Source: Adineta vaga (lineage: Eukaryota; Animalia; Rotifera). From it: a DNA stretch of 64,000 bases. The notes under the pieces are model-generated. The model searched no databases. It was not told the DNA's origin and saw only the letters and a program-made list of their open reading frames with translations. The position numbers and the translations under genes were made by a program. The stretch covers positions 4,650,001-4,714,000 of the forward strand of contig CP075493.1 in NCBI GenBank assembly GCA_021613535.1, in the 5' to 3' direction. Shown one piece after another: positions 15,802-45,673 of this stretch; positions within the stretch are counted from its first letter, which is position 1, and each line of letters starts with the position of its first letter.

Positions 15802-15940
15802 TTTGTTTTTGTTTTTTTCGACAAAGGTTATATGAATAGACTAACACATGATCAGTGTTTTTCATATGATAGAGCTGTTTTATAGATTTTTGTTCATGTG
15901 TTTTACACTATCCAAACATTTTCAAATTTACAAAAATATT

Positions 15941-15956
15941 AGCCCTAAAGAGGGCT
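15941..15956 (-). promoter_or_regulatory. Histone 3' stem-loop of the H2A gene
   Basis: Minus strand reads aaacccaac-AGCCCT-CTTT-AGGGCT about 55 nt after the stop; identical to the H2B element. Confidence 0.9.
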
Positions 15957-16009
15957 GTTGGGTTTTTAGTTAAATCTTGATGTTATGATTTAAGTAAAGT
16001 CAAGCTTAT

Positions 16010-16552
16010 TTAGGCTTTTTCAGCGGCTTTTGAGCCTGATTTTTCGCCAGCTGGTTTCTTTTTGCTTGGACCAGCTCCTGATGATGGTGCTGAAACAGCG
16101 CCACCTTCAGCTGTCTTCTTTGGTAAAAGAATAGCTTGAATATTTGGCAAGACACCACCTTGAGCAATGGTTACACCAGATAATAATTTGTTCAATTCTT
16201 CATCATTTCTGATGGCTAATTGAAGATGACGTGGAATAATACGTGTCTTCTTGTTATCTCGTGCAGCATTGCCTGCTAATTCAAGAATTTCAGCTGATAA
16301 GTATTCGAGGACAGCGCCCAAGTAAACTGGAGCACCAGCACCGACACGTTCAGCATAATTACCACGTCGAAGAAGACGATGAATACGACCCTATGATTTT
16401 AAGAAAAAAGAAGAATTTATAACTTTTTTTGTACATTAAATTTATTAAATAGATAAACTTACAACTGGGAATTGAAGACCAGCTCGTGATGAACGAGTTT
16501 TCGCTTTGGCGCGTGCTTTGCCACTTCCTGCAGTTTTACCACGTCCGGACAT
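16010..16552 (-). CDS. H2A: Histone H2A variant with extended C-terminal tail (156 aa; intron 16391..16462)
   Basis: [16 protein letters not shown]|[14 protein letters not shown] plus tail [33 protein letters not shown]; GTAAG..TAG intron, phase 0. Confidence 0.95.
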
Positions 16553-16804
16553 TGTGTCTTGATTTGTTTTACTTGACGAAAATGTAGAGAGAATGAATGA
16601 TATAGAGATTGAATCAATGTATTCTCTTCTCCTTTTATATGTCCATATAGTGAACAACTTTTTTGACCAATCATCTACGAACATTAATGATTGGTTGTTC
16701 AACTAACAATATATTAAACATATAAGAACGAAAGAAAAAAATCGTTTCGTTCTATTTCATTCGTACAGAAAGAAAGAAAAGTTAACGTCCATTTTTTTTC
16801 CATC
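16553..16804. promoter_or_regulatory. Bidirectional H2A/H2B promoter
   Basis: Divergent ATGs about 250 bp apart; CCAAT at about 16667 and ATTGG at about 16690; TATA-like boxes at about 16633 (-) and 16721 (+). Confidence 0.65.
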
Positions 16805-23686: not shown

Positions 23687-25230
23687 CTATTCAACCATAA
23701 TTACTCGTTCTTCCATAAAGTTTTCTTCTTCATCTTCACCATCATTTAATCTTAATTCTTGTCCAGTAGTTCTCATTGGTTGAGATTGATGAATAAAATC
23801 TGTTAATGTTCGTTCAGTACATTTGGCAAGAAATCTTATGAGTGGTCGTACATCACCATCATTTGCTTGATTGAGATGAGAATAATAAGTTAATCGTTCT
23901 GATTTCTTTATAATTACAGGAGGAAAACCAGATCTCATTAAAATTAAATTCATCAATAAACGTCCTGTTCGACCATTGCCATCAATAAATGGATGGATAT
24001 ATACGAATTTATAATGTGCTATAGCTGCTAATTCAATCGCATGAAGATCTCGTGTATCTTCCAATGAATTAAGCCATTTAAAAAAATCATTCAGATATTC
24101 AGGTATTTCTATTGCGGCAGGTGGTACAAATGATCCGACATATACTTGATGTTTACGTAATTGACCAGCTTGAATAGGATCAACAAAACCGAAAACTCGA
24201 CGATGAATTCCAAGAATATCTTCACGTACAATCGAACCTAAACGATTTACTAATGTACAATTCACATATTGTAATGCTGAATCAAGACCAAGAACTTCTT
24301 GTTGTTCAATAAGAGATTTTCCAGCGACAGCCATTCCTGTTTCAACAATATAACGTGTTTCACGTAAATTTAATGTATTTCCTTCGATTGCATTGGAATG
24401 ATAAATATGTAAATAATAAGCATCACGTTTAGCACGTCTTAGATAAGGATTTGTATCGGAAATACGATAGAATTCTTTGAGAAGATTATCAATAAATGTA
24501 AAACGTTTTTGATCGATTTCTTCGACTAATGGTAAAGTTCGTTGTTTTAATTCTAGTGCACGAAAATTACTCGGTTGTTTCCCTAATGCACGTGTATAAA
24601 AATGTTCAGCACGAATTAGATCTTTTTGATGATATTCAAGAAATTGTCCATATTCAACAAGAATATCCGAATTATGTGGATCAAGAGTTAAAGCTTGATC
24701 AAATACTTTTCGAGCTTTCTCAAATTTATTCGATGCAACTAATTGTAGTGCTAAATTTAGTGCACTTTCAGCTTCTTGACGAAGTTCTAAAGAAAATCAA
24801 GATTATTTAGTCTATATATATATATATTGAAATAAACTTTACCATTTGAGACATTCTTTTGTTTGGATTGATCTTTGATGTACGTTCGTTTATTATTTGA
24901 TAGTTCTTGTCTTCGATCATGTGTTTGTAATTCATGATGATGAAAATATTCAACAGAGATTAAATCTTCTGAAAAGAAGATTTGGCTTGATGTGAGTAGA
25001 CTTAAAGATGATGATGATGAAGAACGAAATGAAGATTTTGAGATAAAATTTAGTAAGAAAATATTAACTAGAATCGTTGTAAAGAATGAGAGAAGAAGAA
25101 AGAGGCAGATTGTCGTCAGAAATCGCGAAATTCGGTTGAAGAGCAACGTTCCATTAGTGAATAAAGAATATGACGTAAAATAACAGGATAGATCATAAGT
25201 ATTAATAACCGAATGATTTGATTTATTCAT
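23687..25230 (-). CDS. FICD: Protein adenylyltransferase FICD/HYPE (intron 24787..24842)
   Basis: HPFIDGNGRTGR Fic motif; SNAIEGN inhibitory helix; TPR region; N-terminal TM. Confidence 0.92.
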
Positions 25231-26718: not shown

Positions 26719-26873
26719 GACGAATTTATATTAATGAAAAGATCTGAAAAATAAAATCATATTTGTAAAACTAGCAAAGAGAGAATCAATCGAAAAAATT
26801 CCTGAATTATTTTCATAACTGACTAGGAAATATCTACGGAGGAAGAGGGATTATCTAACTAAATTTTGTTCGA

Positions 26874-27830
26874 TTATTTAATAATAAATCGTGATTGATA
26901 ACGATTCTGATGAGCATTAGAGAAACACTCTTTCAGTTGTCGACGTAATCCTATAGTTATCGATTGTATAGATTCAAAATGATATTCTACATTTAAGCAA
27001 AAATGTAAAGATTTCAATAAGGGTAAACGTATAGTGAGAATCGATGCAAGCCAATCATAATCACAAATTAGTTCGGTAAGTTTTGAAATTGAAATCGATC
27101 GATAAATAATCAATTGTTCGAGATTGGATACACAACCAAGAAACATATCGATCAGTTGATCATTATAACGCCAATCAGTTATTTCACTATGAATTTCAAG
27201 TTTTTTCAAATTGAAATGTTCTTGAATATTGGAAAGTTTTAAATAAGATTGAAACATTTTCAATTGAAGTGAATGTAAATTTGGACAAGAAGATAGTAGA
27301 GATTTATAAACATGAAAATCGATAAAACCAATTTTTAAAATATGTAATGAACGTGTTTGTGTCCATGGAAGGATTGTTTCAATGGTTTCGAATCCAAATA
27401 GATTACATGATTTTAGATTAGGAAATGTATTCGAAAAGATTTGTTGATAGATAGAAGACATACCAAATAGGATATCCGGAATAGAAAGATATTCCAAATG
27501 AGAAAGATTGCTATCATGAAGTTGATTTAATAAATTATTTGAAGGATATTGTAAAGTTAGACGACGAATATTAGGGAATTGATGAAGTTCGATGTCGACA
27601 TTACCGATGAATATTAGACTATGAATGTGAGAAAAGAAAGAATGATTGTAGATAGAATCAGTGTTTTCCGAAAGAGTAAGATGAAGAGTTTTTAAAGATT
27701 GGATTAATGAATTTAAACGAATATTAAGATTATAGAAAGATTGAAAAAGATCAGAAGTATTTAAATAACTAAAGATATTGATCAGTAATTCATTGGATAG
27801 TAATTCTAATTTCGACGAAGTATTGTTCAT
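26874..27830 (-). CDS. F-box-like/LRR-like array member 9
   Basis: LELLSNELLINIFSYL; C-terminal HQNRYQSRFII. Confidence 0.8.
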   Translation of the reverse strand: MNNTSSKLELLSNELLINIFSYLNTSDLFQSFYNLNIRLNSLIQSLKTLHLTLSENTDSIYNHSFFSHIHSLIFIGNVDIELHQFPNIRRLTLQYPSNNLLNQLHDSNLSHLEYLSIPDILFGMSSIYQQIFSNTFPNLKSCNLFGFETIETILPWTQTRSLHILKIGFIDFHVYKSLLSSCPNLHSLQLKMFQSYLKLSNIQEHFNLKKLEIHSEITDWRYNDQLIDMFLGCVSNLEQLIIYRSISISKLTELICDYDWLASILTIRLPLLKSLHFCLNVEYHFESIQSITIGLRRQLKECFSNAHQNRYQSRFIIK

Positions 27831-28404
27831 AAATAGAAAGAATCTAAAAAGAAAAGAATCGAATGTTGTAATCTATTGAAGTTCTCATTCAAAGGCCGAA
27901 CGCATCATTTACATAACAGACGATTTCCTCTCGATAGATATTGATTCTAAATCAAGTACATATGTGATGATTCTACTAATCAGATCATCCTTCTTCAGGG
28001 TCGTATAGAATCTCTGATAACTTATTATTATTATTATTATTATTATCATTCTTCTTACATTTGTACGTAATAAACAACTCATCAAACTCTTTTTCTCTAT
28101 CAACACTTAAACAAGACTGAAAATTGAATTTGTCCATATCTCAATACTATCTACAAATACGAAAAGACAATATAATCGATGTTCATTCAAATTATCTGCG
28201 AGAAATAAAAGTCCTTCGGATTCATCACAGATAGTCTCATACTGTTTATTTCAAAGAAAAAAATTACTTTTTGACATACGTACGTATACAAAATCCTTAT
28301 TGCTTACTCTTTGATTCAACCTCAAATGTAAACTCTAATAAACAGATGGCGCTCAATATCAATGACGCATTGAAGTAATTGTCGTCCACGTAAAAAGGAA
28401 ATTT

Positions 28405-29337
28405 TTATTTTGTAATAAACGTTCGAAAGTTTAATTCATTATTTGAACAATAAATCTTTCGAAAACAAGGATGTATTTGACGAATTATATCGAGATTATT
28501 TGTCGGATTATCAAACGATGCATCATCAATATTACAATCAAATTGTTTCAAATATTGTAAACGATTTACTAAAGTTTGTGCAAAACGAATAAACGGAATT
28601 CTACATAGAAAATTCAAATAAATTTTCTGAACATTTGGAATAAGAGCAAGTAATTTATGTATGTGATTGAACGATAATTGATGATAAGGATCCAAGAGAT
28701 GAAAATGTTTTAACGAATGATGAATAATTGATGGTGATTGATGAAATATTGAAATTGTATTGAGAAGAAAATCAGCTTGAAGGTATCGAAGATTAGGTGA
28801 AGATGCAAGAATAAAAAGAACAAGTGTTGGATTATTACAGCGAATAGTAATCGATTGAAGTGATGGTGATTGATGCCAAGTACGTAAATGTGGAATATTA
28901 ACAATGCCAAGATCGAGAGAATGAATAGATGGAAATTCATTTGAAAATAAACGTTGAGCTAATTGAGGCATTAGAGTAAATTCTGGAATGGAAGATGTCG
29001 AAAGATAACGAAGTTGTGGCATAAATTCTGATCGAATTTGTTGCAATTGATCTTTTGTGATTTGATATAAGATCAATGATTGTAGAGAAGGAAATTGTTT
29101 CAAATCGATATTTTCCCATGTATTTAAAATTAAATGAATAATTTGATTTGAAAAGAAAGTTATTACTATTGATTCATTTCGTTCAAGATTCAATGAAAGT
29201 TTATCTAATGATCGTATTAGACAATTCAATCGTTTATTTAAATTCCAAAATCCATGAAATAAATCTCGAATATCGATATATTCAAAAAGATCAAGTAATA
29301 CTTCATTTGGTAAATGTTCAATGTTCATTCGATTCAT
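28405..29337 (-). CDS. F-box-like/LRR-like array member 8
   Basis: IEHLPNEVLLDLFEY. Confidence 0.8.
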   Translation of the reverse strand: MNRMNIEHLPNEVLLDLFEYIDIRDLFHGFWNLNKRLNCLIRSLDKLSLNLERNESIVITFFSNQIIHLILNTWENIDLKQFPSLQSLILYQITKDQLQQIRSEFMPQLRYLSTSSIPEFTLMPQLAQRLFSNEFPSIHSLDLGIVNIPHLRTWHQSPSLQSITIRCNNPTLVLFILASSPNLRYLQADFLLNTISIFHQSPSIIHHSLKHFHLLDPYHQLSFNHIHKLLALIPNVQKIYLNFLCRIPFIRFAQTLVNRLQYLKQFDCNIDDASFDNPTNNLDIIRQIHPCFRKIYCSNNELNFRTFITK

Positions 29338-29426
29338 CTACAAAATAAGAAAAATTAGATAGAGAATTTATTAATTAGTCAATCGTAACAGAAAGAAAAA
29401 AAAAGCACTTTTAGTCTTCTTTACAA

Positions 29427-30392
29427 CTAAACTAAATTGAGAACAAGTTGTGAGAGATATCGATTCTTATGTACATGTTTAAAATGTGTTTTCATATGGT
29501 TAATTAGATTTGTATCATAATTTTTCGTTCCATAAATATACAAATGATATGTCAATCGACGTAAGAATACAAAATGTTTCTTTGTTAATGAAGCAAACCA
29601 ATTGAATGTTAAATATTCTTTAATATTAACATCGAAATTAATTTCATAAACAATAAATTGTTCTAAATTTGGTACACATGATAAATATTGATTCATAATT
29701 GAATCAGGTAATGTTTTCATATGACTTTGAAATTTAATGATCATTCGTTTAAGATTTAAATGTGGTTTTATTGCACATGATTCATCTAAATCATCGAGGA
29801 TATTGAATTGCAAAATATATAAATTAGGACATAAAGAAAGAAGAGATTTATATGTTAATAAATCGATATTATCCATTTTTAAAATAGATAATTGTATTGT
29901 TTGTGTCATATGTGGAATAATTTCAAGGATTCGTGGTTCAAGAAGTGAACAAGATTTTAAACAAGGAAAACCATTTGAAAATATCTTTTCACATAAATCA
30001 GGAATATGATCACAAAAAAGAAAATGTTCATATCCAATTGTTAAATGTTCTAAATAAGGTAAAGTATTGCAAACAAGTTGTTTCAATTGACTAGATGTTG
30101 GAGATAATAAAACTAAACGATGAATGTTTAGAAAATGATTGAAATCAATATTGACTGCATAATCCATGATTAATGTATAGATATAAGGAGTTAATTCATT
30201 GTAATAATCTATTTCATTCGAATTGTACTTAAATAAAGTTAATGACAGATAATGAAGTGATTGAAGAAGATGATTGAAACGAATATTCAGATTATAGAAT
30301 GCTCGAAAAAGATCTCGAGCATCAAAATGTTGAAAAATGAATATGAGCAGTTCATTAGGTAAACATTCGAAACGTGAAGGTATGTTACTCAT
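29427..30392 (-). CDS. F-box-like/LRR-like array member 7
   Basis: FECLPNELLIFIFQH; IFSNGFP and CPNL motifs. Confidence 0.8.
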   Translation of the reverse strand: MSNIPSRFECLPNELLIFIFQHFDARDLFRAFYNLNIRFNHLLQSLHYLSLTLFKYNSNEIDYYNELTPYIYTLIMDYAVNIDFNHFLNIHRLVLLSPTSSQLKQLVCNTLPYLEHLTIGYEHFLFCDHIPDLCEKIFSNGFPCLKSCSLLEPRILEIIPHMTQTIQLSILKMDNIDLLTYKSLLSLCPNLYILQFNILDDLDESCAIKPHLNLKRMIIKFQSHMKTLPDSIMNQYLSCVPNLEQFIVYEINFDVNIKEYLTFNWFASLTKKHFVFLRRLTYHLYIYGTKNYDTNLINHMKTHFKHVHKNRYLSQLVLNLV

Positions 30393-30493
30393 ACCTTCAG
30401 TAATTATCTAGAAAATATTTGTAAAAAAAAATAGGTATGTATTTCATTAAAGCAACTATAAATCCTAAAACAGTGATTTAAAAGAAAATATTA

Positions 30494-31438
30494 TCAAAAT
30501 AATTTGGTTCGGACGACAATAAATCGAGATTGATATCGATTATGATGAGTAATATAAAAATTCTCTTCGATTTCATCAAGGGTAAATGTCTCGTTACGTG
30601 CAATATCACAAATATGAAAATAAAAATCAAATTGTTGAAGAAATATTAAATGGGTACTTATTATTGATGCTAACCAATTGTATTTCTGTTTGAAAAACAT
30701 ATCTGTTTGATGAACACTGAAATATTCAAGTTCAGGAACATAGGAAAGACAACAATCAATATCATTATCTTTCCATGGTTGAAGAAATGGTGACGTACGA
30801 ATGATTAATTGTTTAAGATTTCGATGTGGAACAATAGACATCAATGTATTATTTGATGTTAATGTTGCTAATTGAAGAGATGATAAATTTGGACAACTGG
30901 TTAATATTGATTTATAAATAATTAAATCAATTTTTCCAACTTTAACAATACGTAATGTTGGTGAAAGTGTCCATTGTGAATTCTTAATGATTGTTCCCCA
31001 TTTGAATAGTTGACAAGATTTAAGTTTTGGAAAAGCATTGGAAAATGTTTGCTTGCAAAGATTTGGAATGTAATTAAAAACCGAAATATGCATATGATTG
31101 ATAGAAAGATATTTCAAATGTTGAAATGTTAGATAATTAAATTGAGATAATAAATTTTCTGTTGGATATCGAAGAATTAATGAATGAATGTGAAGAAAAT
31201 GATTGAGATCAACATTGATAGCTCGATGAATGATAAGTGTACGAATGAATGGAAACGAATCATCTTCAGTATAACGATGTGTTGAAATATTAAGAGTTAA
31301 ATATGGAAATGTTTCTAATAGATTATTAAAACGTAAATTTAAATTATAAAATGCTCGAAATAGATGTGAAGATTGTAGAAATTGAAAAATATCATTGAAG
31401 ATTTCATTCGGCAAGGATTCCAATTGAAATATATTCAT
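30494..31438 (-). CDS. F-box-like/LRR-like array member 6
   Basis: LESLPNEIFNDIFQF; first in-frame ATG at 31438. Confidence 0.8.
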   Translation of the reverse strand: MNIFQLESLPNEIFNDIFQFLQSSHLFRAFYNLNLRFNNLLETFPYLTLNISTHRYTEDDSFPFIRTLIIHRAINVDLNHFLHIHSLILRYPTENLLSQFNYLTFQHLKYLSINHMHISVFNYIPNLCKQTFSNAFPKLKSCQLFKWGTIIKNSQWTLSPTLRIVKVGKIDLIIYKSILTSCPNLSSLQLATLTSNNTLMSIVPHRNLKQLIIRTSPFLQPWKDNDIDCCLSYVPELEYFSVHQTDMFFKQKYNWLASIISTHLIFLQQFDFYFHICDIARNETFTLDEIEENFYITHHNRYQSRFIVVRTKLF

Positions 31439-31537
31439 TATCACAATCTTGTCTTACTCTCATATTCAAATCATTACTATAGAATCATCTAAAACAAAGA
31501 CGAAAATAAATTTTTATTTAATAATCAATCGTGCATT

Positions 31538-32476
31538 TTATCGATTTTTATGAACATGATAAAATTGTTCAATGATTTGATCGAGAATACTGTTCATACG
31601 AGGTCCAAGAACAATTGTAGCTTTACCAACATGAAAAATATGAAAATAACAATAAAATCGGTGTAGAAAAGGAAAATATGAAGGAATAATTGTTGAAAGC
31701 CAATCATAATTAATAAATGATTTGTTAACTATCGAAATATTATCTTGTCGATGAAGACTTAATCTTTCCAGATTAGATAAACAAGAAAACAAATCATTCA
31801 ACACAAGAATATGTTCATTCTTTTTCCAAGTATTACATTTCGTTTTCAACACCAAATGTTTTAAATTACTATATGGTCGAATATCACGAGAGATTTCACA
31901 AGGAAGAATAATACCTGTATTTAGATTATATAAATTCGGACATGTTGATAAAAGTATTTTAATCGATGAGAGATCCAAATATGAAAATGTTAAACTATAT
32001 AAATGATTTATTTGTATCCAATCAATTGTATTCTGTATTGGTTCATTATCAAGATGATAGAATGATTTCAATTGCGGAAAACCATTAGTAAAGATTTTGG
32101 AATGTAAATTCGACATTTTTTCTGATAATTGTACAGATTGTATTGAAATATGTTCAAGATTATTTAATTGATTTGTTTGAAGTTGTACGAGAATGTTTTC
32201 GGTTGGATTATTCAAAACTAGACGAGATAAATTCCGGAATGGATGAAGATTCATTTCAATCTGCTCATTGATAGATAAAGTGTGCAAATAGGGAAATATA
32301 ATGGACATATTATTGATTTGATTTTGATTAGTTTTCGAAATAGTTAAAGAAAGATAAGGAGTGGATTGTATTAAATGATTCAAACGAATATTTAAGTTAT
32401 GAAATAGTTGAACAATTTCATTAGCATGAAAATATTGAAATAGATAAAAAAATAATTCATTTGGAAATTGTTCCAT
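31538..32476 (-). CDS. F-box-like/LRR-like array member 5 (C-terminus shortened by 8 aa)
   Basis: MEQFPNELFFYLFQY; ends HVHKNR* followed in frame by NARLIIK*. Confidence 0.75.
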   Translation of the reverse strand: MEQFPNELFFYLFQYFHANEIVQLFHNLNIRLNHLIQSTPYLSLTISKTNQNQINNMSIIFPYLHTLSINEQIEMNLHPFRNLSRLVLNNPTENILVQLQTNQLNNLEHISIQSVQLSEKMSNLHSKIFTNGFPQLKSFYHLDNEPIQNTIDWIQINHLYSLTFSYLDLSSIKILLSTCPNLYNLNTGIILPCEISRDIRPYSNLKHLVLKTKCNTWKKNEHILVLNDLFSCLSNLERLSLHRQDNISIVNKSFINYDWLSTIIPSYFPFLHRFYCYFHIFHVGKATIVLGPRMNSILDQIIEQFYHVHKNR

Positions 32477-32549
32477 TTTCAATTCATCTAGAAAAAAGAA
32501 ACAGAAATCTTTCTAATCAAAATCATGACATATAGATTGATAATTACTT

Positions 32550-32837
32550 CTAGGAATGTTCAATAATTAAATGTAATTGATATTGATCTTGTTATTCGCG
32601 GGATATATTAATAAAATGAACTTTTACGAACAAAGTTGTTGAAGTTCATCATTTGATGACCATTCTAATTTTGAACATCGAACATTTGGAAATTGATTTA
32701 AATTCACTTCGATGCCAGCATGAACCTGTAATGAATAAACAAACGATAGAAATATTTGATTTCCGTTGATTTGATTTTTATTCGAATTTTTCAAAGCAAA
32801 AACAATCCAATAGAATTTCATTAGGTAAAGATTCCAT
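32550..32837 (-). pseudogene. F-box-like array member 4, internally deleted pseudogene
   Basis: MESLPNEILLDCF start, middle fragment EVNLNQFPNVR, C-terminal remnant QYQLHLII*; stops and frameshifts; only about 290 bp. Confidence 0.75.
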
Positions 32838-32864
32838 CTGGAATATAAAAAGAAAGCAAAATTA

Positions 32865-33851
32865 CTAAGCTAGAATTCGTATTCGAGCTTGATAATGGTA
32901 TTTATGTACATTATGAAACTGTTCTTTCAATGCACAAAACATATTTTCACGAAAACATTTCGTAAATCTTTTCTTATCATAAATATTTAAAATTAATTGA
33001 AATTTTTGAAGTAATCGTAATGAACGAAGAAGGATCGATGCAAACCAATCATAATTTGAATAGTCAGTTATCTTTCGAAAAGACGTTGAACGATAGATTG
33101 TCAATTTTTCTAGATTTGGAATGCATTGAAGATATTCTTGAATATGTTGATCATTCCAAGGTAAAGATAAATCATCATCTTTAATAATCATTTGTCGTAA
33201 TTGAAAATGAAACATTAGATTTGGTAATGTCGATTCAATCAATGGCAATAATGTTGTGAATTGAATGAAATGTAAATTTGGACATGCAGAAAGAATGGAT
33301 CTATAAATTATTGGATTAAGTTTTCCAATTCGAAGAAATTTCAATGAAAAACATTGTTGCCAAGATTCATTTGGATGTTGAACTTCTATATCGATAAAAT
33401 GGCAAGATTTTAAATATGGAAAATCATTGGAAAATATTCGTTGATATAAATCATTGATTGACGATTGAATTGTTGTTGTATTGAATTTATGAGTAATGGA
33501 AAGATATTCAATCAAATGAATGAATTGAAAATTCAATTGTTCGAAGATTTTCTCTTTTGGATTTCGTAATATTAGACAACGAAGATTCTTGAATTTTCTC
33601 AAACTAATATTAATTCCACGATCAATAATTAATGTTCGAATACAATGTAATAAAATCTCATCATTCTTATTTTCCTTCATATCAAATAATGAAATAGTTA
33701 AATGTAAACAATTCAATGAGAATAAAAGTTTTGTAAAACGATTATTAAGATAAGAAAATGAATGAAAAAGTTGACGAGCATCAACATATTTACATATATC
33801 GACGATTAATTCATTAGGTAAATCTTCTAAACAAGTTATATTCATCGACAT
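32865..33851 (-). CDS. F-box-like/LRR-like array member 3
   Basis: LEDLPNELIVDICKY. Confidence 0.8.
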   Translation of the reverse strand: MSMNITCLEDLPNELIVDICKYVDARQLFHSFSYLNNRFTKLLFSLNCLHLTISLFDMKENKNDEILLHCIRTLIIDRGINISLRKFKNLRCLILRNPKEKIFEQLNFQFIHLIEYLSITHKFNTTTIQSSINDLYQRIFSNDFPYLKSCHFIDIEVQHPNESWQQCFSLKFLRIGKLNPIIYRSILSACPNLHFIQFTTLLPLIESTLPNLMFHFQLRQMIIKDDDLSLPWNDQHIQEYLQCIPNLEKLTIYRSTSFRKITDYSNYDWFASILLRSLRLLQKFQLILNIYDKKRFTKCFRENMFCALKEQFHNVHKYHYQARIRILA

Positions 33852-33977
33852 AATAACAACTTATCTAAAATAAAGAAAATTATTGTTCATCGGTAAAGAT
33901 TAAACAATGATAATCATTGAGGAACACAGATGGTAAAATTCAATTACAAATTTATTATTAAAATAAAAAGCAAAATT

Positions 33978-34904
33978 CTATTCTAATAGAAACACTCGTG
34001 ATCCATCATTTTGTACAATACATTCTAAATTATGTAAACATTCATGAATTTGTTGAATACTTTCTACATCGATCATTTGAGTATTTGGTAATTCGAGAAT
34101 ATCACATTCAAATCGATTCAATTGTTCTAATTGTTGAAAGATATTTTCCATTAGAAGAAGAAATGGTACACGACATAGAAATCGTAAAAATAAATATTTA
34201 ACATTGGGTATATAACGTAAAAGAATTTGTATAGTTTCATAGGATAATCGATGATATAGATCATCTAAAAAGAATTTCTCTAATGGATGATCAGAAGATG
34301 ATGATGATGGAGGAAGAATATGATGATTTTGACCGAAGAAAGTTATATGAAAATCAGATAAATTTGGACAAGCTGAAAGAAGTTGAATAATCACATTGGC
34401 ATGTGTACAAGTAATACGTAATGTTTGAAGAGAAAGTGATTGAAATCGAGGTGATATTTGAAATGTATCTAAACGATTGAGAGTTGCATGACGAAGAAAA
34501 CGAAAATCAGTCGAAAATATTTCACGTAAAGTTTCCAAAGGTAAAGATATATGAAATGGTGTATGGATATTGAGATTGATTAAATTTGGCATTAGTACAG
34601 ATCGAATTTGTTCAAGTTGATAACCATTTGCTTGACATAATTCTAATGTTTGAAGATTGGAAAATTTTGTTAAATCAATTGATGTTGAAGTCTCAACTTT
34701 TAAATGAAATATTTGACGTGCAAAGATTTCCGTAAAGAATGGTTCTTCTTTGTCAATAATAAGACAATGATTAGTTAATGAACGAAGTAATGTATTCAAT
34801 CGTTGATTGATTCCCCAAAAACTTTGATATAAATTGAATAGATCAAAATATACGAATAGATCAAGAATGATTTCATTTGGTAAATCTTCGAATTGAATGG
34901 ACAT
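33978..34904 (-). CDS. F-box-like/LRR-like array member 2
   Basis: MSIQFEDLPNEIILDLFVY; ATG at 34904. Confidence 0.8.
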   Translation of the reverse strand: MSIQFEDLPNEIILDLFVYFDLFNLYQSFWGINQRLNTLLRSLTNHCLIIDKEEPFFTEIFARQIFHLKVETSTSIDLTKFSNLQTLELCQANGYQLEQIRSVLMPNLINLNIHTPFHISLPLETLREIFSTDFRFLRHATLNRLDTFQISPRFQSLSLQTLRITCTHANVIIQLLSACPNLSDFHITFFGQNHHILPPSSSSSDHPLEKFFLDDLYHRLSYETIQILLRYIPNVKYLFLRFLCRVPFLLLMENIFQQLEQLNRFECDILELPNTQMIDVESIQQIHECLHNLECIVQNDGSRVFLLE

Positions 34905-34988
34905 ATCTAGAAAATAGATAGTAAACAAAAAATTGCAATGTATTTATTAATATCTTTGTAATGAAAACTATCAAAACAAAAATCACGT

Positions 34989-36002
34989 TTAGTTTTCAGT
35001 AAAAATTCGAATTACAGATTCATCGACAACGTATTTTTCATATTTGATATGTTTAAAACATATATGAAATGAATGCAATTTTTCGAAATCAATTTGTTCT
35101 TCTTGATTACTGATTAAATCACAATGAAAAGAAATTAACTTGGGTAAACGACTGGAAAATATAAAAGCTAATTTTTGAAAATTCCATAGAAAATCCATCG
35201 TAATTGCATCAAAATATGAAGTATAAAGTCGTAAATGTTCCACTGTTGGAATGTATGAAAAACAATAATCAAGTTTATCATATGTCCAATGACCATTGAG
35301 GTGTAATTTGATATGTTTTAAACACGAATGTTGAAAAATACTTGAATCATTGAGTATTACATATGTTAATGGCCAATTTAAAAATAATTCAAATACTCTT
35401 AGAAACATTAAAACAGAAGAAATACGTTTAAAAATTGTGCATGGATTATTTGACCATATACCTAATGATTTTAACGATGGAGAACCAGTCCATAATTCAC
35501 TATCGTCAACATTGTTTAATGAACATTTTTTTAGTAATGGAAATGCATTTGAAAAAATCTTTTGATGAAGTTTATGTAATTCAGTTTTAGCTGTTGAATA
35601 ATTCATATGGAAATATTCTAATCGAGGAAATGTTTCTGGATTTATCATTTGAATAAGTTTAATGGTTGGAATGTCAATAATCAATGAATGAATATGTGAA
35701 TAATTAATTAAATTTTCATTGATTATATATCTATTATCAATAAATCGAAGTCTTGTGATAAGTTTTTGTTTGTTGAATAAACGAGAAAGAAATTTCTCAG
35801 GAATTTTACCGTCTTGAATATGATCAGGATAAAGAATATGCTGATGAATATTTGAGGAGAATAGAAGCGAATTTAAACGATAATTTAAATTAAAAAATCC
35901 ATGAATTAAATCATTTAAATCAATAAATTCGAATATTTCCAATAGAATTTCATCAGGAAGTTTTTCTAATATATATGAACATATCACATTATCAGTTGTC
36001 AT
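34989..36002 (-). CDS. F-box-like/LRR-like array member 1
   Basis: LEKLPDEILLEIFEF. Confidence 0.8.
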   Translation of the reverse strand: MTTDNVICSYILEKLPDEILLEIFEFIDLNDLIHGFFNLNYRLNSLLFSSNIHQHILYPDHIQDGKIPEKFLSRLFNKQKLITRLRFIDNRYIINENLINYSHIHSLIIDIPTIKLIQMINPETFPRLEYFHMNYSTAKTELHKLHQKIFSNAFPLLKKCSLNNVDDSELWTGSPSLKSLGIWSNNPCTIFKRISSVLMFLRVFELFLNWPLTYVILNDSSIFQHSCLKHIKLHLNGHWTYDKLDYCFSYIPTVEHLRLYTSYFDAITMDFLWNFQKLAFIFSSRLPKLISFHCDLISNQEEQIDFEKLHSFHICFKHIKYEKYVVDESVIRIFTEN

Positions 36003-36759
36003 TAATATACTGTTAACGATTGATAAATATTATCGATCCAAGTGACGAAAACGTGTTTTATCTTTGTTGTTATTATGACACATGAAGTGAAACTTATGAT
36101 TCATTAAGAATATTTTAGAGACGAGTAAAATAATACTAATCATGTCAAATTTTACGACGATAGGAAGTATGTATCGATCGATAGAAGAATAGAAACAAGA
36201 AAAACTGATGTTTTTTCTTGTTCTTCAAAACAAAATGTTTCAAATCAGAGAACAAATAGAAATTTCATCATAGTCGAAGAAAGGAATGATCAATAGATGT
36301 CATTATATACAGATTTACACCTAATGCTTTCGTGTTCAGTTTTATAGAATTGAAGAAATGTCGAAGTGACAATGAAATATATAACTCTATGAATTTCAAT
36401 CGTTTGTCTTTGCACAATCATTTCTAAGTATGACTACAATCTTATTCGTTTTTTGTTACGTCCGTTCGCATTGATCAATGTGTAGAAAATTACAAATCTA
36501 GATTTTATTCGATTAATATTAATAAAGAAGAATTTGAATACTTATCAAAGTTATTGCAAACGAATAGGATATGACTATCTACTAACTAATCGATTAATCA
36601 TTATCTGGTGTCATGTAGACAATGACAAATCTCAAACTTAGTGTGCAACATATTACAATACTGTCAGTGACTAATATTTAGCTAATGAATTACAAAACAA
36701 TAGAGTAAGTTAACTTTTTCTAGTCAGGCGGATGAATGTTCGTCATTAAGGTTACCGTT

Positions 36760-37927: not shown

Positions 37928-39288
37928 TTAACTTGCCACTGTTACTTCTGCTTCATCTTCAATACGTTCCCACCATGCCCATGTTAGTAAACCTGGTTCA
38001 GCACCAGGATATGATCGATGTGGAGCAATGCATCGAAATTTAATACCATCATACATCACTTCATCACCTTTTTGGTAGTCAAAAAGTTCTGATGACCATG
38101 TTGTTAAACCAAGTGGTGGACGAGATGTCGTTGTAGATGTTGATACTACTGCTCCTTGAGTTGATGATGTTGACCACCATGTCGATGGATTTGCCGACGA
38201 CCAAGTGGATGGATTCGTTGGCCACCATGTCGATGGATTTGTTGACCACCAAGTGGATGGATTTGTTGGCCACCATGTCGATGGATTTGTTGACCACCAA
38301 GTGGATGGATTTGTTGGCCACCATGTTACAGTATTTGGCGATGACCATGACCAATGATTTGATGATGATGATGTTGAAATGGATGACGTAGCAGTACTTG
38401 GTCTAATCGTTGGTCTATATATAATATATATCATAACTCAAAAGACGAAAAAATCGATAAGCATACACTGTAGGTATGATAACCATAGGTGGATCTATTG
38501 GTGAACCATTTGATAAAATAGCAATATCTGAACAGCCCATGAATGTTTCATTTTCTTTTCCAAGACCAGGACCAGATTGACCAGTGGTTGGATCTGTACC
38601 CCAACTATTACCTGCCGTATATTTCCATTGAAAAACACAGTGTTGACAAGCAACATTCGGAGGAAGTTGTACACGAAGTGCAATCATTTCTGACCCATAT
38701 TTATCAACATCACGAAACTTTGTTGAATCTGTATTTGCAATTTTCAATAGATGACGATCAAGACATTCTTGAGAAGCATCTGCTGATGGACTGGCATCCA
38801 AATTACATAGACGAAATTCAAAATAACCTTTATGATTTGCTGTTAACTATAATTCACAAACAGAACTAAAACTTTTACTCTCTATTGACTCATTGAAAAT
38901 TCAACCTACCACTACTTGTACATCGATTTGTTGTCCTTGGGTATATGTTCGAACAATCGTACCTTTATACCTAGCTCCACCTTTTTCAAAATCTTTTACT
39001 GGTTTGTCATAGGCTTCTCCGCAAATACTACATTTCCCACCTAAATTAACTCTTCACAATAGATATATTTGTAGAAAATAAATCATAAAACCAACCATTG
39101 ACATTCCATTGATGTCCTAAACCTCCACAGAACATTTCCATATGTTGAGGCCAAGTACAACATTGTCGAAATGAAGCATCAACGAGCCAAGCTGAACTAC
39201 GAGCGACTGGTTCTAATAAATATCCATGTCCATAAATTGATACTAAACAATAGGAAAATAGAACCGTAAAACCTAATAGTGTGATCAT
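37928..39288 (-). CDS. AA15 lytic polysaccharide monooxygenase with Trp/Thr repeat linker and CBM5/12-like module, multi-exon
   Basis: Signal peptide then His1 (HGYLLEPVARSSAW); ANHKGYFEF; QWKYTAGNSWG; ETFMGCSDI; C-terminal YQKGDEVMYDGIKFRCIAPHRS..EPG..W. Confidence 0.85.
38175..38345 (-). repeat. 24-bp coding repeat WW(P/S)TNPST, about 7 copies
   Basis: direct reading of ORF 37928..38434. Confidence 0.9.
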
Positions 39289-41551: not shown

Positions 41552-44500
41552 CTATAGATCTTTAACATAAATACAGTTTGAGACAGCACTGTCTGCATCG
41601 GAAGCTTGTGCAAGATATGTATCTGAAAATGTTGATCGACTAATTGTAACATTTCCTTTTATAACTGTTGTTTCATGACCATTATATTCAACGTATATCA
41701 ATAGTTGAATATCTTGAAAAACATTACCAATCTCGTTTGAAGTGTAGTCTAATGCAAAATTAACCGTAGCATTCACAGTTACAGATGACATTTGCTTCAT
41801 GGACGTTTCTCGTCGTCGTCTTGTAATTGGACTTACATCGGCTGATATTGTCGAAACAATAACATTCAATAACGTACTCGGAAAGTATATAAAAAATAGA
41901 TCAAATATAGTATCGGCTGTTGCTGAAGTATTATAACTATATCCAGACCAATAGTCTGTAGTGTCAAATGTCACATATAAAGAAAAATCAGCTTTGAATA
42001 CTAAGCGAACTGAGGCATTTCGTGGTGTTGATGGAGATGAATTTTCTTCATCGTTCGAACTTGAAGTAACTATTATATTATTACAAGTTGAATTCAGGCA
42101 TATAACGTAATTCTTTTCCTTAACAGAATTATCTGGAGTAGGATTACTTTGAAAATTCGAAAATTCATCAAGAAAAGTGCTTAACCTTGAACTCTCCTGA
42201 TCATCAGACGTTACGAGAGATATAGAAGGTGTATAATTTTGAAAAACACTCCTCACTTTGTCAACTGTAATATTTTGCTTCAAATAAAGCCGACCATCAA
42301 TCACTATCTTCAATCTTCGATCCCATCCAAGAGGCGCACGATCCGTCACTTTTTCAACATGTGTTTCTACCTCTTCATTTGCATAAGCGTTTCTCTTCCT
42401 CCGTTTCGAAGGCTTGGTTACCACTGAATCACTCTCAGTCGATACGTTTAACATCACATATGTAAGAAAATATTCATTTAAATAACTTGTCATTTGTGAA
42501 TAATGAGTTGAAAATAAATATGCGCGTTCAGCAGAACGGTTATAAAATTCTAATAACTCGCTATCCAACATCATTCGTTGTAACACTATGCTAATATTCA
42601 TGGAAATCAACGGTTCACATGATGTGCCCGTAACTTGAGTCGACGTTGAAACGACTGCTGTGGTATCGCTACTACCATATGAACCCTTTTCTGTTGATTC
42701 CGTAGTGTGATTATTTTTACTTGGGTCTTCTGTCATCGGTATATCGGTGATAGTAGTATATGGAACTGTAGGTAAATCAGTGGTAGTCGTATATGGAACT
42801 GTAGGTAAATCGGTGGTAGTCGTATATGGAGCTGTAGGCTCATCCGTGATGGCTGTATATGTTGCTGTAGGTTCATCAGTGATAATCGTATATATTGCTG
42901 CAGGTTCAACGGTGATGGTCGTATATGGAACTGTAGGTAAATCGGTGGTAGTCGTATATGGAGCTGTAGGCTCATCAGTGATAATCGTATATGTTGCTGC
43001 AGGTTCATTGGTGATGGTCGTATATGGAACTGTAGGTTCATCGGTGATGGTCGTATATGTTGCTGCAGGTTCATTGGTGATGGTCGTATATGGAACTGTA
43101 GGTAAATCGGTGGTAGTCGTATATGGAGCTGTAGGCTCATCCGTGATGGCTGTATATGTTGCTGTAGGTTCATCGGTGATGGTCGTATATATTGCTGCAG
43201 GTTCATTGGTGATGGTCGTATATGGAACTGTAGGTAAATCGGTGGTAGTCGTATATGGAGCTGTAGGCTCATCCGTGATGGCTGTATATGTTGCTGTAGG
43301 TTCATCGGTGATGGTCGTATATATTGCTGCAGGTTCAACGGTGATGGTCGTATATGGAACTGTAGGTAAATCGGTGGTAGTCGTATATGGAGCTGTAGGC
43401 TCATCCGTGATGGCTGTATATGTTGCTGTAGGTTCATCGGTGATGGTCGTATATATTGCTGCAGGTTCAACGGTGATGGTCGTATATGGAACTGTAGGTA
43501 AATCGGTGGTAGTCGTATATGGAGCTGTAGGCTCATCCGTGATGGCTGTATATGTTGCTGTAGGTTCATCGGTGATGGTCGTATATATTGCTGCAGGTTC
43601 AACGGTGATGGTCGTATATGGAACTGTAGGTAAATCGGTGGTAGTCGTATATGGAGCTGTAGGCTCATCCGTGATGGCTGTATATGTTGCTGTAGGTTCA
43701 TCAGTGATAATCGTATATATTGCTGCAGGTTCAACGGTGATGGTCGTATATGGAACTGTAGGTAAATCGGTGGTAGTCGTATATGGAGCTGTAGGCTCAT
43801 CAGTGATAATCGTATATATTGCTGCAGGTTCATTGGTGATGGTCGTATATGGAACTGTAGGTTCATCGGTGATGGTCGTATATGTTGCTGCAGGTTCATT
43901 GGTGATGGTCGTATATGGAACTGTAGGTAAATCGGTGGTAGTCGTATATGGAGCTGTAGGCTCATCCGTGATGGCTGTATATGTTGCTGTAGGTTCATCG
44001 GTGATGGTCGTATATATTGCTGCAGGTTCATTGGTGATGGTCGTATATGGAACTGTAGGTAAATCGGTGGTAGTCGTATATGGAGCTGTAGGCTCATCCG
44101 TGATGGCTGTATATGTTGCTGTAGGTTCATCGGTGATGGTCGTATATATTGCTGCAGGTTCAACGGTGATGGTCGTATATGGAACTGTAGGTAAATCGGT
44201 GGTAGTCGTATATGGAGCTGTAGGCTCATCCGTGATGGCTGTATATGTTGCTGTAGGTTCATCGGTGATGGTCGTATATATTGCTGCAGGTTCAACGGTG
44301 ATGGTCGTATATGGAACTGTAGGTAAATCGGTGGTAGTCGTATATGGAGCTGTAGGCTCATCCGTGATGGCTGTATATGTTGCTGTAGGTTCATCAGTGA
44401 TAATCGTATATATTGCTGCAGGTTCAACGGTGATGGTCGTATATGGAACTGTAGGTAAATCGGTGGTAGTCGTATATGGAGCTGTAGGCTCATCAGTGAT

Positions 44501-45673
44501 AATCGTATATATTGCTGCAGGTTCATCCGTGATGGTCGTATATGGAACTGTAGGTAAATCGGTGGTAGTCGTATATGGAGCTGTAGGCTCATCAGTGATA
44601 ATCGTATATGTTGCTGCAGGTTCATTGGTGCTGTTTGTATATGGAACTGTAGGTTCATCGGTGATGGTCGTATATGGAACTGTAGGTAAATCAGTGATAG
44701 TCGGATATCCAGTTGCAGGTGTATAGGTACTATATGGAGATCTAGTTGCAAGTGTATAGGTACTATTCGGATATCCAGTTACTGTGACATTGATATTTGT
44801 TCCATTGTTTGGTATGGTTGTATTTAGGAAAACTGAATGATCATTAGGTGTCGTATTGGTGCTATTTGAAGATTCCATTGCTGTTGTACTGTGATTGCCC
44901 GTATTGTTCGAAACTGTTACCGTGACGGTAAATGGGTGTTCAGTTGTTCTTTCAACTTTATCTTTATTGGTAGAAGAATTTGATAGAAAAGTTGTGCCTG
45001 TGGTTGCTAATGTACTTTCGGGATTAGTCGGATGTAGCGGTAGTAGATTCAAAATAGTGTCCTTTGGTGTCATCTGATCATCATCAGGATCTACTGTAAT
45101 AGAAGAAAGCCGTTTGACTTTTTTTTCTGTAAGTTTGTCCGGTCGTGTATCGGTGGCAAAAGAGTAAAGCTCAGATAATGTTGCCAATTTTGAACTGGGT
45201 TTACCATCTTTGGTAAGAAGAGTTACATTTCTTGTATAATTTTTTAGTACAGATAGAATCTCTTCTTTCGTATGATGTTCTTTAAAATAGATGGTTCCTT
45301 CGACAGCAACAATTGATGGACGTTCGGTATCACGCTTTTTTTTCGTTGAAAGCACAACAGGTCTATGAGTGAACTTTAAAATAATCAACTTGATGAATGA
45401 TGGTGATAAAAATGATTGTCGAAAATGTTCGTTAAGACTTTCGATAAGATCAATTAATGTTCCCGGTTTACTATAAAACCGATCCCATTCATTTTCAGCA
45501 ATAAGACGATCAAGCGCTACACGTATCTCTCCTAATTCGACTTCTTGATCGGGAGGGATATTAACAACTATAATAATAACTGCAATAGTTGCTGCAGTCA
45601 CACTAGCTATAGTTCCGACAATAATCCCTATCGAAAGTATTCGAATACCTACGAACGGATCAAATAAGACCAT
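41552..45673 (-). CDS. Type II membrane mucin-like protein with 11-aa Thr/Pro/Tyr repeats and SEA-like domains
   Basis: 1373-aa single ORF; N-terminal TM; about 60 repeats such as DEPTAPYTTTT; KKKR, RRKR and RRRR sites. Confidence 0.8.
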   Translation of the reverse strand: MVLFDPFVGIRILSIGIIVGTIASVTAATIAVIIIVVNIPPDQEVELGEIRVALDRLIAENEWDRFYSKPGTLIDLIESLNEHFRQSFLSPSFIKLIILKFTHRPVVLSTKKKRDTERPSIVAVEGTIYFKEHHTKEEILSVLKNYTRNVTLLTKDGKPSSKLATLSELYSFATDTRPDKLTEKKVKRLSSITVDPDDDQMTPKDTILNLLPLHPTNPESTLATTGTTFLSNSSTNKDKVERTTEHPFTVTVTVSNNTGNHSTTAMESSNSTNTTPNDHSVFLNTTIPNNGTNINVTVTGYPNSTYTLATRSPYSTYTPATGYPTITDLPTVPYTTITDEPTVPYTNSTNEPAATYTIITDEPTAPYTTTTDLPTVPYTTITDEPAAIYTIITDEPTAPYTTTTDLPTVPYTTITVEPAAIYTIITDEPTATYTAITDEPTAPYTTTTDLPTVPYTTITVEPAAIYTTITDEPTATYTAITDEPTAPYTTTTDLPTVPYTTITVEPAAIYTTITDEPTATYTAITDEPTAPYTTTTDLPTVPYTTITNEPAAIYTTITDEPTATYTAITDEPTAPYTTTTDLPTVPYTTITNEPAATYTTITDEPTVPYTTITNEPAAIYTIITDEPTAPYTTTTDLPTVPYTTITVEPAAIYTIITDEPTATYTAITDEPTAPYTTTTDLPTVPYTTITVEPAAIYTTITDEPTATYTAITDEPTAPYTTTTDLPTVPYTTITVEPAAIYTTITDEPTATYTAITDEPTAPYTTTTDLPTVPYTTITVEPAAIYTTITDEPTATYTAITDEPTAPYTTTTDLPTVPYTTITNEPAAIYTTITDEPTATYTAITDEPTAPYTTTTDLPTVPYTTITNEPAATYTTITDEPTVPYTTITNEPAATYTIITDEPTAPYTTTTDLPTVPYTTITVEPAAIYTIITDEPTATYTAITDEPTAPYTTTTDLPTVPYTTTTDLPTVPYTTITDIPMTEDPSKNNHTTESTEKGSYGSSDTTAVVSTSTQVTGTSCEPLISMNISIVLQRMMLDSELLEFYNRSAERAYLFSTHYSQMTSYLNEYFLTYVMLNVSTESDSVVTKPSKRRKRNAYANEEVETHVEKVTDRAPLGWDRRLKIVIDGRLYLKQNITVDKVRSVFQNYTPSISLVTSDDQESSRLSTFLDEFSNFQSNPTPDNSVKEKNYVICLNSTCNNIIVTSSSNDEENSSPSTPRNASVRLVFKADFSLYVTFDTTDYWSGYSYNTSATADTIFDLFFIYFPSTLLNVIVSTISADVSPITRRRRETSMKQMSSVTVNATVNFALDYTSNEIGNVFQDIQLLIYVEYNGHETTVIKGNVTISRSTFSDTYLAQASDADSAVSNCIYVKDL
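42745..44770. repeat. 33-bp minisatellite with 132-bp higher-order units
   Basis: gtcgtatatggaactgtagg-like unit every 33 bp; 4-unit cycle recurs. Confidence 0.95.

Follow-up and report, generated by a model that had tools for sequence, protein, structure and literature searches.

Closely packed genes on one strand may each be transcribed from their own promoter, or they may share a primary transcript that is later cut into separate messages. This question is raised by a gene array in the bdelloid rotifer Adineta vaga, located in a stretch of 64,000 nucleotides (nt) of contig CP075493.1 (assembly GCA_021613535.1, positions 4,650,001 to 4,714,000), which we call the window and whose own numbering is used below. 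On the minus strand of the window, eight intact intronless open reading frames (ORFs) of 308-337 amino acids (aa), designated g1 to g8, lie head to tail together with one decayed copy (ORF listing, starts refined), and a coding intron is required by none of the eight. This arrangement had been described in an earlier, sequence-only reading of the window, which proposed an operon of F-box-like cistrons matured by coupled polyadenylation and spliced-leader (SL) trans-splicing; the gene content and the lack of coding introns were confirmed. We conclude that the locus holds intronless FBXL-like genes in a collinear tandem array of ancient origin, in which the downstream coding exons begin at genuine 3' splice sites. 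As an operon it is a candidate, and our own evidence does not reach a demonstration.

A pyrimidine tract followed by AG was found 0-50 nt ahead of all nine downstream starts, including those of the relic and of the next, unrelated gene. The acceptor G residues are at 34907, 33865, 32838, 32488, 31489, 30408, 29338 and 27844, exactly as previously listed, and at 26744 for the unrelated gene. An acceptor was scored when at least 9 of 12 pyrimidines and an AG were present no more than 60 nt upstream of the start. Eight of the nine downstream starts passed, whereas the background was 17%, both at random positions and at all same-strand ATGs (binomial probability ~5e-6, with paralogues being non-independent samples). 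Upstream of the g1 ATG, no acceptor passed the 9/12-pyrimidine test.

The spacing of the genes is tight at five junctions. Stop-to-ATG gaps in array order are 84, 126, 388, 99, 101, 89, 574 and 155 nt, the tight ones being those of 84, 126, 99, 101 and 89 nt, and the stop-to-AG gaps are 81, 112, 26, 48, 85, 88 and 560 nt. AATAAA, ATTAAA or AATGAA is present downstream of the stop codons of g1-g7, the signal nearest g7 overlapping the g7 stop codon; for g8, judged by eye, there is only an ATTAAA that overlaps the stop codon. These poly(A) signals start at 34948, 33956, 31518 and 29372 (AATAAA) and at 30448 (AATGAA), and they end 34, 22, 33 and 27 nt from the acceptors of g2, g5, g6 and g7, respectively, and 84 nt from that of g3. 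The three AATAAA signals noted previously (34943, 31513 and 29367) are indeed close to their acceptors, at 34, 22 and 27 nt. Since the ORFs are separated by 84-126 nt and four acceptors have a poly(A) signal 22-34 nt ahead of them, no free DNA is left for a promoter at these junctions. Thus, a polymerase that transcribes one gene carries the acceptor of the next gene in the same primary transcript.

RNA was available as assembled contigs from four runs (X1, X2, X3 and X11) of three studies, over 30350-36340. The depth, bin by bin, equaled the sum of the listed contigs, and the runs behaved as RNA; such contigs cannot reveal where transcripts end, and one that extends across two genes is no proof of a single transcript. 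Two contigs ending at 32548 continue with 13 and 16 further letters, which read on the minus strand as ATGAATTGAAAATGGA; this 16-mer occurs only once in the window, at 32472-32487. The interval 32488-32547 was uncovered in X1-X3. This joint, 32548/32487, indicates that a 60-nt GT-AG intron is removed and that the g4 acceptor is therefore paired and spliced in cis. No other RNA joint was seen in the four runs. The acceptors had all been described as unpaired, which is incorrect for 32488, joined in RNA to a GT donor at 32547. The acceptors are genuine 3' splice sites, and use was seen at one of them, that of g4.

The exon that is joined to g4 is the decayed paralogue between g3 and g4, which begins with a 19-codon stub and whose relic homology matches an intact A. 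steineri gene (tblastn, E 2e-12). Contigs of this exon span 32548-32865, 32548-32883 and 32600-32899, so that they abut or enter the g3 ORF. In two runs they overlap contigs of g3, coverage from g3 into the g4 5' exon is unbroken, and the depth of the exon equals that of the g4 body. Because the exon reaches 32865-32899, the RNA feeding the g4 acceptor begins in the 3' end of g3 or further upstream, and these contigs fit the prediction of a read-through transcript.

The first gene of the array differs at its 5' end from those behind it. In the four runs, RNA contigs extended upstream of g1 to 36075, 36085, 36171 and 36187, and none went further; the g1 5' untranslated region (UTR) is contiguous with the ORF and covers at least 170-185 nt upstream of the ATG. 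By contrast, contigs of g2, g3 and g5 stop short of the acceptors in all runs, reaching at furthest 34902, 33830 and 31479. The upstream neighbor of g1, a gene with an LPMO domain, is 1.9 kb away. The contig depth of g1-g5 was nearly equal within each of three runs (8.5-12 in X2 and X3, 12-25 in X1), a hint of co-regulation, given that contig depth is a poor measure for ranking genes. The g3-g4 result, the g1 5' end with its 1.9-kb upstream spacer and the near-equal depth in three runs favor read-through over promoters embedded in the array. Read-through co-transcription is the most economical account of the tight junctions, a judgment that we hold tentatively and that falls just short of probable.

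In this explanation, the downstream genes would be expressed at least partly from read-through, operon-like transcripts starting upstream of g1. The primary transcripts would be cut to single-gene mRNAs by polyadenylation and by splicing at the acceptor, in trans to the spliced leader where the upstream RNA has no donor and in cis where it has one, as at g4. An acceptor close to a poly(A) site would let the leader cap the downstream RNA. We infer leader addition at the other acceptors, a read-through origin of the downstream mRNAs and a lack of internal promoters. The broader view, that bdelloids have SL-resolved operons of the tunicate type and that this array is a case of seven to ten cistrons that encode paralogous F-box receptors, with one promoter upstream of g1 and decay of the relic having turned a trans acceptor into a cis acceptor, is plausible but should be held more loosely.

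Spliced-leader genes are present in the genome. The rotifer spliced-leader exon is listed as GGCTTATTACAACTTACCAAGAG, a single leader sequence being given for rotifers (PMC3795323). When the 100.8-Mb genome (six contigs) was searched for this exon with up to two mismatches, 59 matches were found, compared to none for the reversed sequence used as a control, and the spliced-leader genes that the earlier reading presupposes are present in this organism. In one SL gene that was inspected, the exon is followed directly by a GTAAAT donor. SL RNA genes occur in head-to-head pairs with exon starts ~154 nt apart (L001:1380-1700, which is G000:C1 ~2551160-2551336, and others), large SL gene clusters are found on contig 5, and the first base of the exon is T in the genome versus G in the published leader. 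A scan of the window found no leader-like sequence. Among Logan and metagenome contigs of other bdelloids, the leader was found in none, by script in L007-L009 and L015-L018 and by inspection in L019 and L020; these contigs are taken for genomic DNA because all of them include sequence upstream of the acceptors.

Homologues of the array genes were found in Rotaria, A. steineri and A. ricciae, and on contigs from metagenomes or sequencing runs that were taken for uncultured bdelloids. In a maximum-likelihood tree, one-to-one pairs were well supported for g3 (first Rotaria gene), g4 (second Rotaria gene), g5 (third A. steineri gene) and g6 (fourth gene of both Rotaria and A. steineri); g7 grouped with the fifth gene of each of these two, with weaker support (88/98). 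The gene order is the same in A. vaga, A. steineri and Rotaria, which indicates that the array predates the split of Adineta and Rotaria. The counterpart of the g3-g4 relic is an intact gene in A. steineri and a broken copy, in the same place, in Rotaria. A paralogous array on contig 4 of the A. vaga genome has gaps of 39, 81, 491 and 143 nt, and tight gaps of 24-143 nt are found in this array, in A. steineri and in uncultured bdelloids. NCBI lists a family member from contig 4 under the name hypothetical protein I4U23_019740 [Adineta vaga]. In one member of the contig 4 array (L010:7840-8814, G000:C4 ~8554340-8555313), the frame is open from the acceptor through the LPNE motif and the first ATG comes only after the start of the F-box, so that this gene is either broken or in need of an upstream exon. 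In A. steineri, two array members have local duplications (L011:6580-7545 and 15776-16747; L011:2533-2652 and 14478-15077), with branch lengths of 0.02-0.03 and with fragments that are 94-95% identical; these recent duplications indicate that the array is still turning over in this species.

In every family member examined, the ATG was preceded at a distance of 0-25 nt (50 nt at g5) by a pyrimidine tract and (T)AG, with AT as the usual next two bases. The distance to the upstream gene is 24-188 nt in Adineta and several uncultured bdelloids, and 0.86-2.3 kb in Rotaria. Judged from these sequences, the acceptor motif is a feature of the family and no mark of an operon by itself, because it is equally present in orthologues with upstream spacers of 0.86-2.3 kb.

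Several observations weigh against read-through from a single promoter, and they are best considered together with the strongest competing explanation, an ordinary tandem array of separately transcribed genes. Compact promoters would then lie in the spacers or in the 3' ends of upstream ORFs, the packing would reflect genome compaction, and each acceptor would serve a short outron for trans-splicing or a short intron in the 5' UTR. We consider this a real possibility, although not the likelier one. The Rotaria orthologues keep the same acceptors at 0.86-2.3 kb from their neighbors, and in an annotated gene model the A. steineri orthologue of g6 has a local 5' exon, followed by a 55-nt intron whose 3' end is the acceptor; together, these findings indicate that the family can run on separate promoters. 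Candidate GTAA-type donors are present 60-109 nt ahead of the g2, g3, g7 and g8 acceptors, although a rough, uncalculated estimate is that chance alone would put such donor-like GTAA sequences at about half of comparable sites in DNA this AT-rich.

The RNA data weigh on the same side in several respects. No RNA contig in the four runs crosses the g2-g3 or the g4-g5 gap: 33831-33989 and 31480-31532 are uncovered in all four, and there are further holes at 32490-32547 and beyond 36187; the genes beside these holes have a depth of 8-50. At no acceptor did any RNA contig carry the leader, which in leader-joined reads would be expected to end in ...ACTTACCAAGAG; at a contig depth of ~10, junction words 23 nt from the end of an mRNA may have been lost. 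In X11, neighboring genes differ five-fold in depth. The g3-g4 contigs, moreover, would also come from a promoter inside g3, or from a g3 3' UTR that overlaps a separate g4 transcript. In addition, no operon had been reported in rotifers according to PMC7986045, searches of the available literature likewise gave no such report, and rotifers are named among trans-splicing lineages without operon data (PMC12460157).

The spacers themselves divide the argument. The earlier claim that the gaps are too short for a promoter holds at the five tight junctions, where the lack of promoter room counts against separate transcription, and does not extend to the 388- and 574-nt spacers, which may hold internal promoters. 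A conserved single-copy element in the 574-nt spacer ahead of g8 is in keeping with a promoter there. Another finding against separate transcription is that the g4 5' exon goes back to or into the g3 ORF. Taken together, the anatomy, the SL genes, the g3-g4 continuity and the lack of an acceptor at g1 support the previously proposed operon in part, and the lack of leader at any acceptor and the two uncrossed gaps do not support it.

The element just mentioned is a non-coding sequence of ~100 nt at 28270-28365 (minus strand), in the g7-g8 spacer, with a counterpart at L009:1415-1500. Its core reads GAGCGCCATCT.TTTAT ... TAAGCAATA ... TTTGTATACG, and in another bdelloid it is located downstream of an F-box gene. 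It had no Rfam match, and shuffled sequence was predicted to fold at least as well; a role as promoter or regulatory element is possible. The Rfam scan gave one weak match, at chance level. A scan for bacterial-type promoters showed no enrichment, and this type of scan is not applicable to A. vaga.

A second alternative is that mature bicistronic or polycistronic mRNAs keep two or more ORFs and lose the spacers as ordinary introns, in the manner seen between the relic and g4. The continuous coverage of g3, relic and g4 with one cis intron would fit, as would a GTAAAG immediately 3' of the g6 stop codon and a GTAATT 3' of the g2 poly(A) signal. However, 32548/32487 is the only joint seen, each gene has its own poly(A) signal, and downstream ORFs on polycistronic mRNAs are poorly translated under scanning initiation, which makes this explanation unlikely. 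Separate mature mRNAs were seen at two junctions besides that of g4.

It is more doubtful still that the apparent acceptor is a core promoter, with the A/T-rich hexamer ~30 nt upstream in the role of a TATA-like box and TTAGAT in that of an initiator, from which nearly leaderless mRNAs would result. TTAGAT is similar to the YYANWYY initiator consensus, the hexamer is 22-34 nt before the AG at four junctions, and RNA contigs end near the AG. Against this, splicing uses the motif at 32488 as an acceptor, a pyrimidine tract of 9-12 nt is a splice-site feature, and the hexamer is less frequent where orthologues have a long upstream gap (~4/14), as expected of the poly(A) signal of an upstream gene. 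Contig ends on the acceptor A, at 34908 (a g1 contig in X1) and 32839 (X11), were tried as message ends and dropped, as the ends track allelic bubbles; a variant near 32869 would account for both the 32839 end and the 32899 end (X2). The ends at 34908 and 32839 would fit a junction of the tunicate type but were not counted, in view of the allelic variants. Finally, a single non-coding leader exon upstream of g1, cis-spliced to each ORF, had been offered as the alternative in the sequence-only reading and is highly improbable: the four runs contain no long-range joint, the g1 5' UTR is contiguous with g1, and nothing was found in its favor.

The proteins encoded by the array had been called F-box-like. 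Pfam F-box-like and F-box matches were below the curated cut-off in 7 of the 8 proteins (PF12937, 16-22.6 bits against 24.3; PF00646, at most 18.9 against 20.5; threshold not reached), and on this point the assignment is not supported. It is supported by the predicted fold and by the annotation of orthologues: about one quarter of the homologues found have precomputed PF12937 or PF00646 matches, and several are named 'F-box domain-containing protein'. A family profile built from 24 sequences had weak matches to FBXL5, FBXL17 and leucine-rich repeat (LRR) proteins, and the LPNE motif (LPxE) aligns with the F-box of FBXL5. The AlphaFold2 model of g6 (predicted local distance difference test score, pLDDT, 85.7) starts with three helices at the N terminus and continues as an alternation of strands and helices. 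Its best Foldseek matches were FBXL2, SKP2, TIR1, FBXL3 and FBXL17 in SKP1-cullin-F-box (SCF) complexes, with E values of 4e-6 to 5e-4 and template modeling (TM) scores of 0.25-0.49. On the basis of this model, a fair description of the array proteins would be F-box plus LRR proteins that resemble FBXL substrate receptors.

The features of the array are listed in the table below. Short upstream ORFs are found directly after acceptors, as in the g4 5' exon (32778-32837, the stub MESLPNEILLDCFCFEKFE), and before the ATGs of g4 (32479-32487, ATGAATTGA) and g5 (31477-31488, ATGATTCTATAG); they could damp translation.

Table. Features of the F-box/LRR gene array, in the order of the minus strand (window coordinates)
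Feature	Position	Strand	Remarks
g1 5' UTR	36003..36187	-	Contiguous with genome; without strong acceptor before ATG; RNA contigs
g1, 337 aa F-box/LRR	34989..36002	-	First gene of the array; most diverged paralogue
g1-g2 junction	34905..34988	-	AATAAA 34943-34948; acceptor AG 34907-34908; ATG 34904
g2, 308 aa F-box/LRR	33978..34904	-	ORF
g2-g3 junction	33852..33977	-	AATAAA 33951-33956; acceptor AG 33865-33866; no RNA contig across
g3, 328 aa F-box/LRR	32865..33851	-	Rotaria orthologue L013:940-1923
g4 non-coding 5' exon (decayed paralogue)	32548..32864	-	Acceptor AG 32838-32839; stub ORF 32778-32837; relic homology 32627-32839
g4 5' intron, 60 nt GT-AG (GTAATT...TCTAG)	32488..32547	-	Joins relic exon to g4 coding exon
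g4, 312 aa F-box/LRR	31538..32476	-	Rotaria orthologue L013:4222-5199
g4-g5 junction	31439..31537	-	ATTAAA/AATAAA 31513-31522; acceptor AG 31489-31490; short upstream ORF after acceptor
g5, 314 aa F-box/LRR	30494..31438	-	A. steineri orthologue L011:6580-7545
g5-g6 junction	30393..30493	-	AATGAA 30443-30448; acceptor AG 30408-30409
g6, 321 aa F-box/LRR	29427..30392	-	Protein whose structure was predicted
g6-g7 junction	29338..29426	-	AATAAA 29367-29372; acceptor AG 29338-29339 abuts ATG
g7, 310 aa F-box/LRR	28405..29337	-	Rotaria orthologue L013:10061-11008
g7-g8 spacer, 574 nt	27831..28404	-	Conserved element ~28270-28365; acceptor AG 27844-27845; candidate donor GTAAAT at 27912
g8, 318 aa F-box/LRR	26874..27830	-	ORF
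Junction of g8 with next, unrelated multi-exon gene (ATG 26718)	26719..26873	-	Acceptor AG 26744-26745

Outside the array, an ORF-based screen of 200 kb more of the genome gave mostly intron junctions and no comparable junctions. The upstream neighbor (37928-39288, minus strand) is a multi-exon gene with an LPMO_10 domain, whose last long ORF has a tryptophan-rich NPSTWW repeat. Further upstream, 41552-45673 (minus strand) contains an ORF of 1373 aa with a long Thr/Pro-rich tandem repeat (PTxPYTTxTD units) and a local G+C fraction of 0.37-0.42, compared to ~0.30 elsewhere in the window. An exon with a Fic/DOC domain (Pfam E 7e-26) is located at 23687-24334 (minus strand), two genes beyond the downstream end of the array.

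Nematodes, tunicates, flatworms and chaetognaths are known to have operons that are resolved by trans-splicing. If proven, the array would add a phylum to this list, and in an asexual animal it would tie trans-splicing to genome compaction in a way open to testing. It also offers a natural comparison, in that the same ordered genes are packed in Adineta and ~1-2 kb apart in Rotaria. With one junction switched to cis-splicing after decay of a paralogue, the locus is suited to asking whether packing creates operons.

Several known operon types are close to the array. The operons of Ciona and Oikopleura, reportedly described by Satou and co-workers in 2008, and the SL1-type operons of Caenorhabditis elegans, reportedly described by Williams and co-workers in 1999, are said to have little or no intercistronic region. 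The A. vaga array resembles both in its single leader, its co-directional genes and an upstream poly(A) signal tens of nt from an acceptor just before the ATG. It differs in that its cistrons are paralogues, one junction is cis-spliced, and leader addition and a common primary transcript are, in A. vaga, only proposed. With the SL2-type operons of C. elegans, the array shares tight same-strand clustering that would be resolved by 3' end formation and trans-splicing. In SL2-type operons, however, the poly(A) site is ~100 nt from the acceptor, with a U-rich element between them and a dedicated SL2, whereas the A. vaga spacing is 22-34 nt and a single leader sequence is listed for rotifers (PMC3795323). 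Chaetognaths are relatives of rotifers within Gnathifera, and their operons were called from gaps of <250 bp and leader evidence; similar to the A. vaga array, they involve trans-splicing without an operon-specific leader, but leader-bearing reads were found there and none at the A. vaga locus (PMC12460157).

On the protein side, the array products resemble FBXL-type SCF proteins (SKP2, FBXL2, FBXL3 and TIR1) in a predicted N-terminal three-helix F-box followed by an LRR solenoid. They differ from them in an identity of only 9-14%, in sub-threshold Pfam scores, and in forming a bdelloid-specific family with one-to-one orthologues across genera. The g4 junction has its own precedent. In C. elegans, Conrad and colleagues are said to have found that a 5' splice site placed upstream converts an outron to an intron and trans-splicing to cis-splicing. 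Similarly, the donor to which the g4 acceptor is joined in cis lies within the decayed upstream paralogue; in contrast to that system, g4 would be a natural case, brought about by the decay of a pseudogene, of an acceptor that was probably once trans-spliced.

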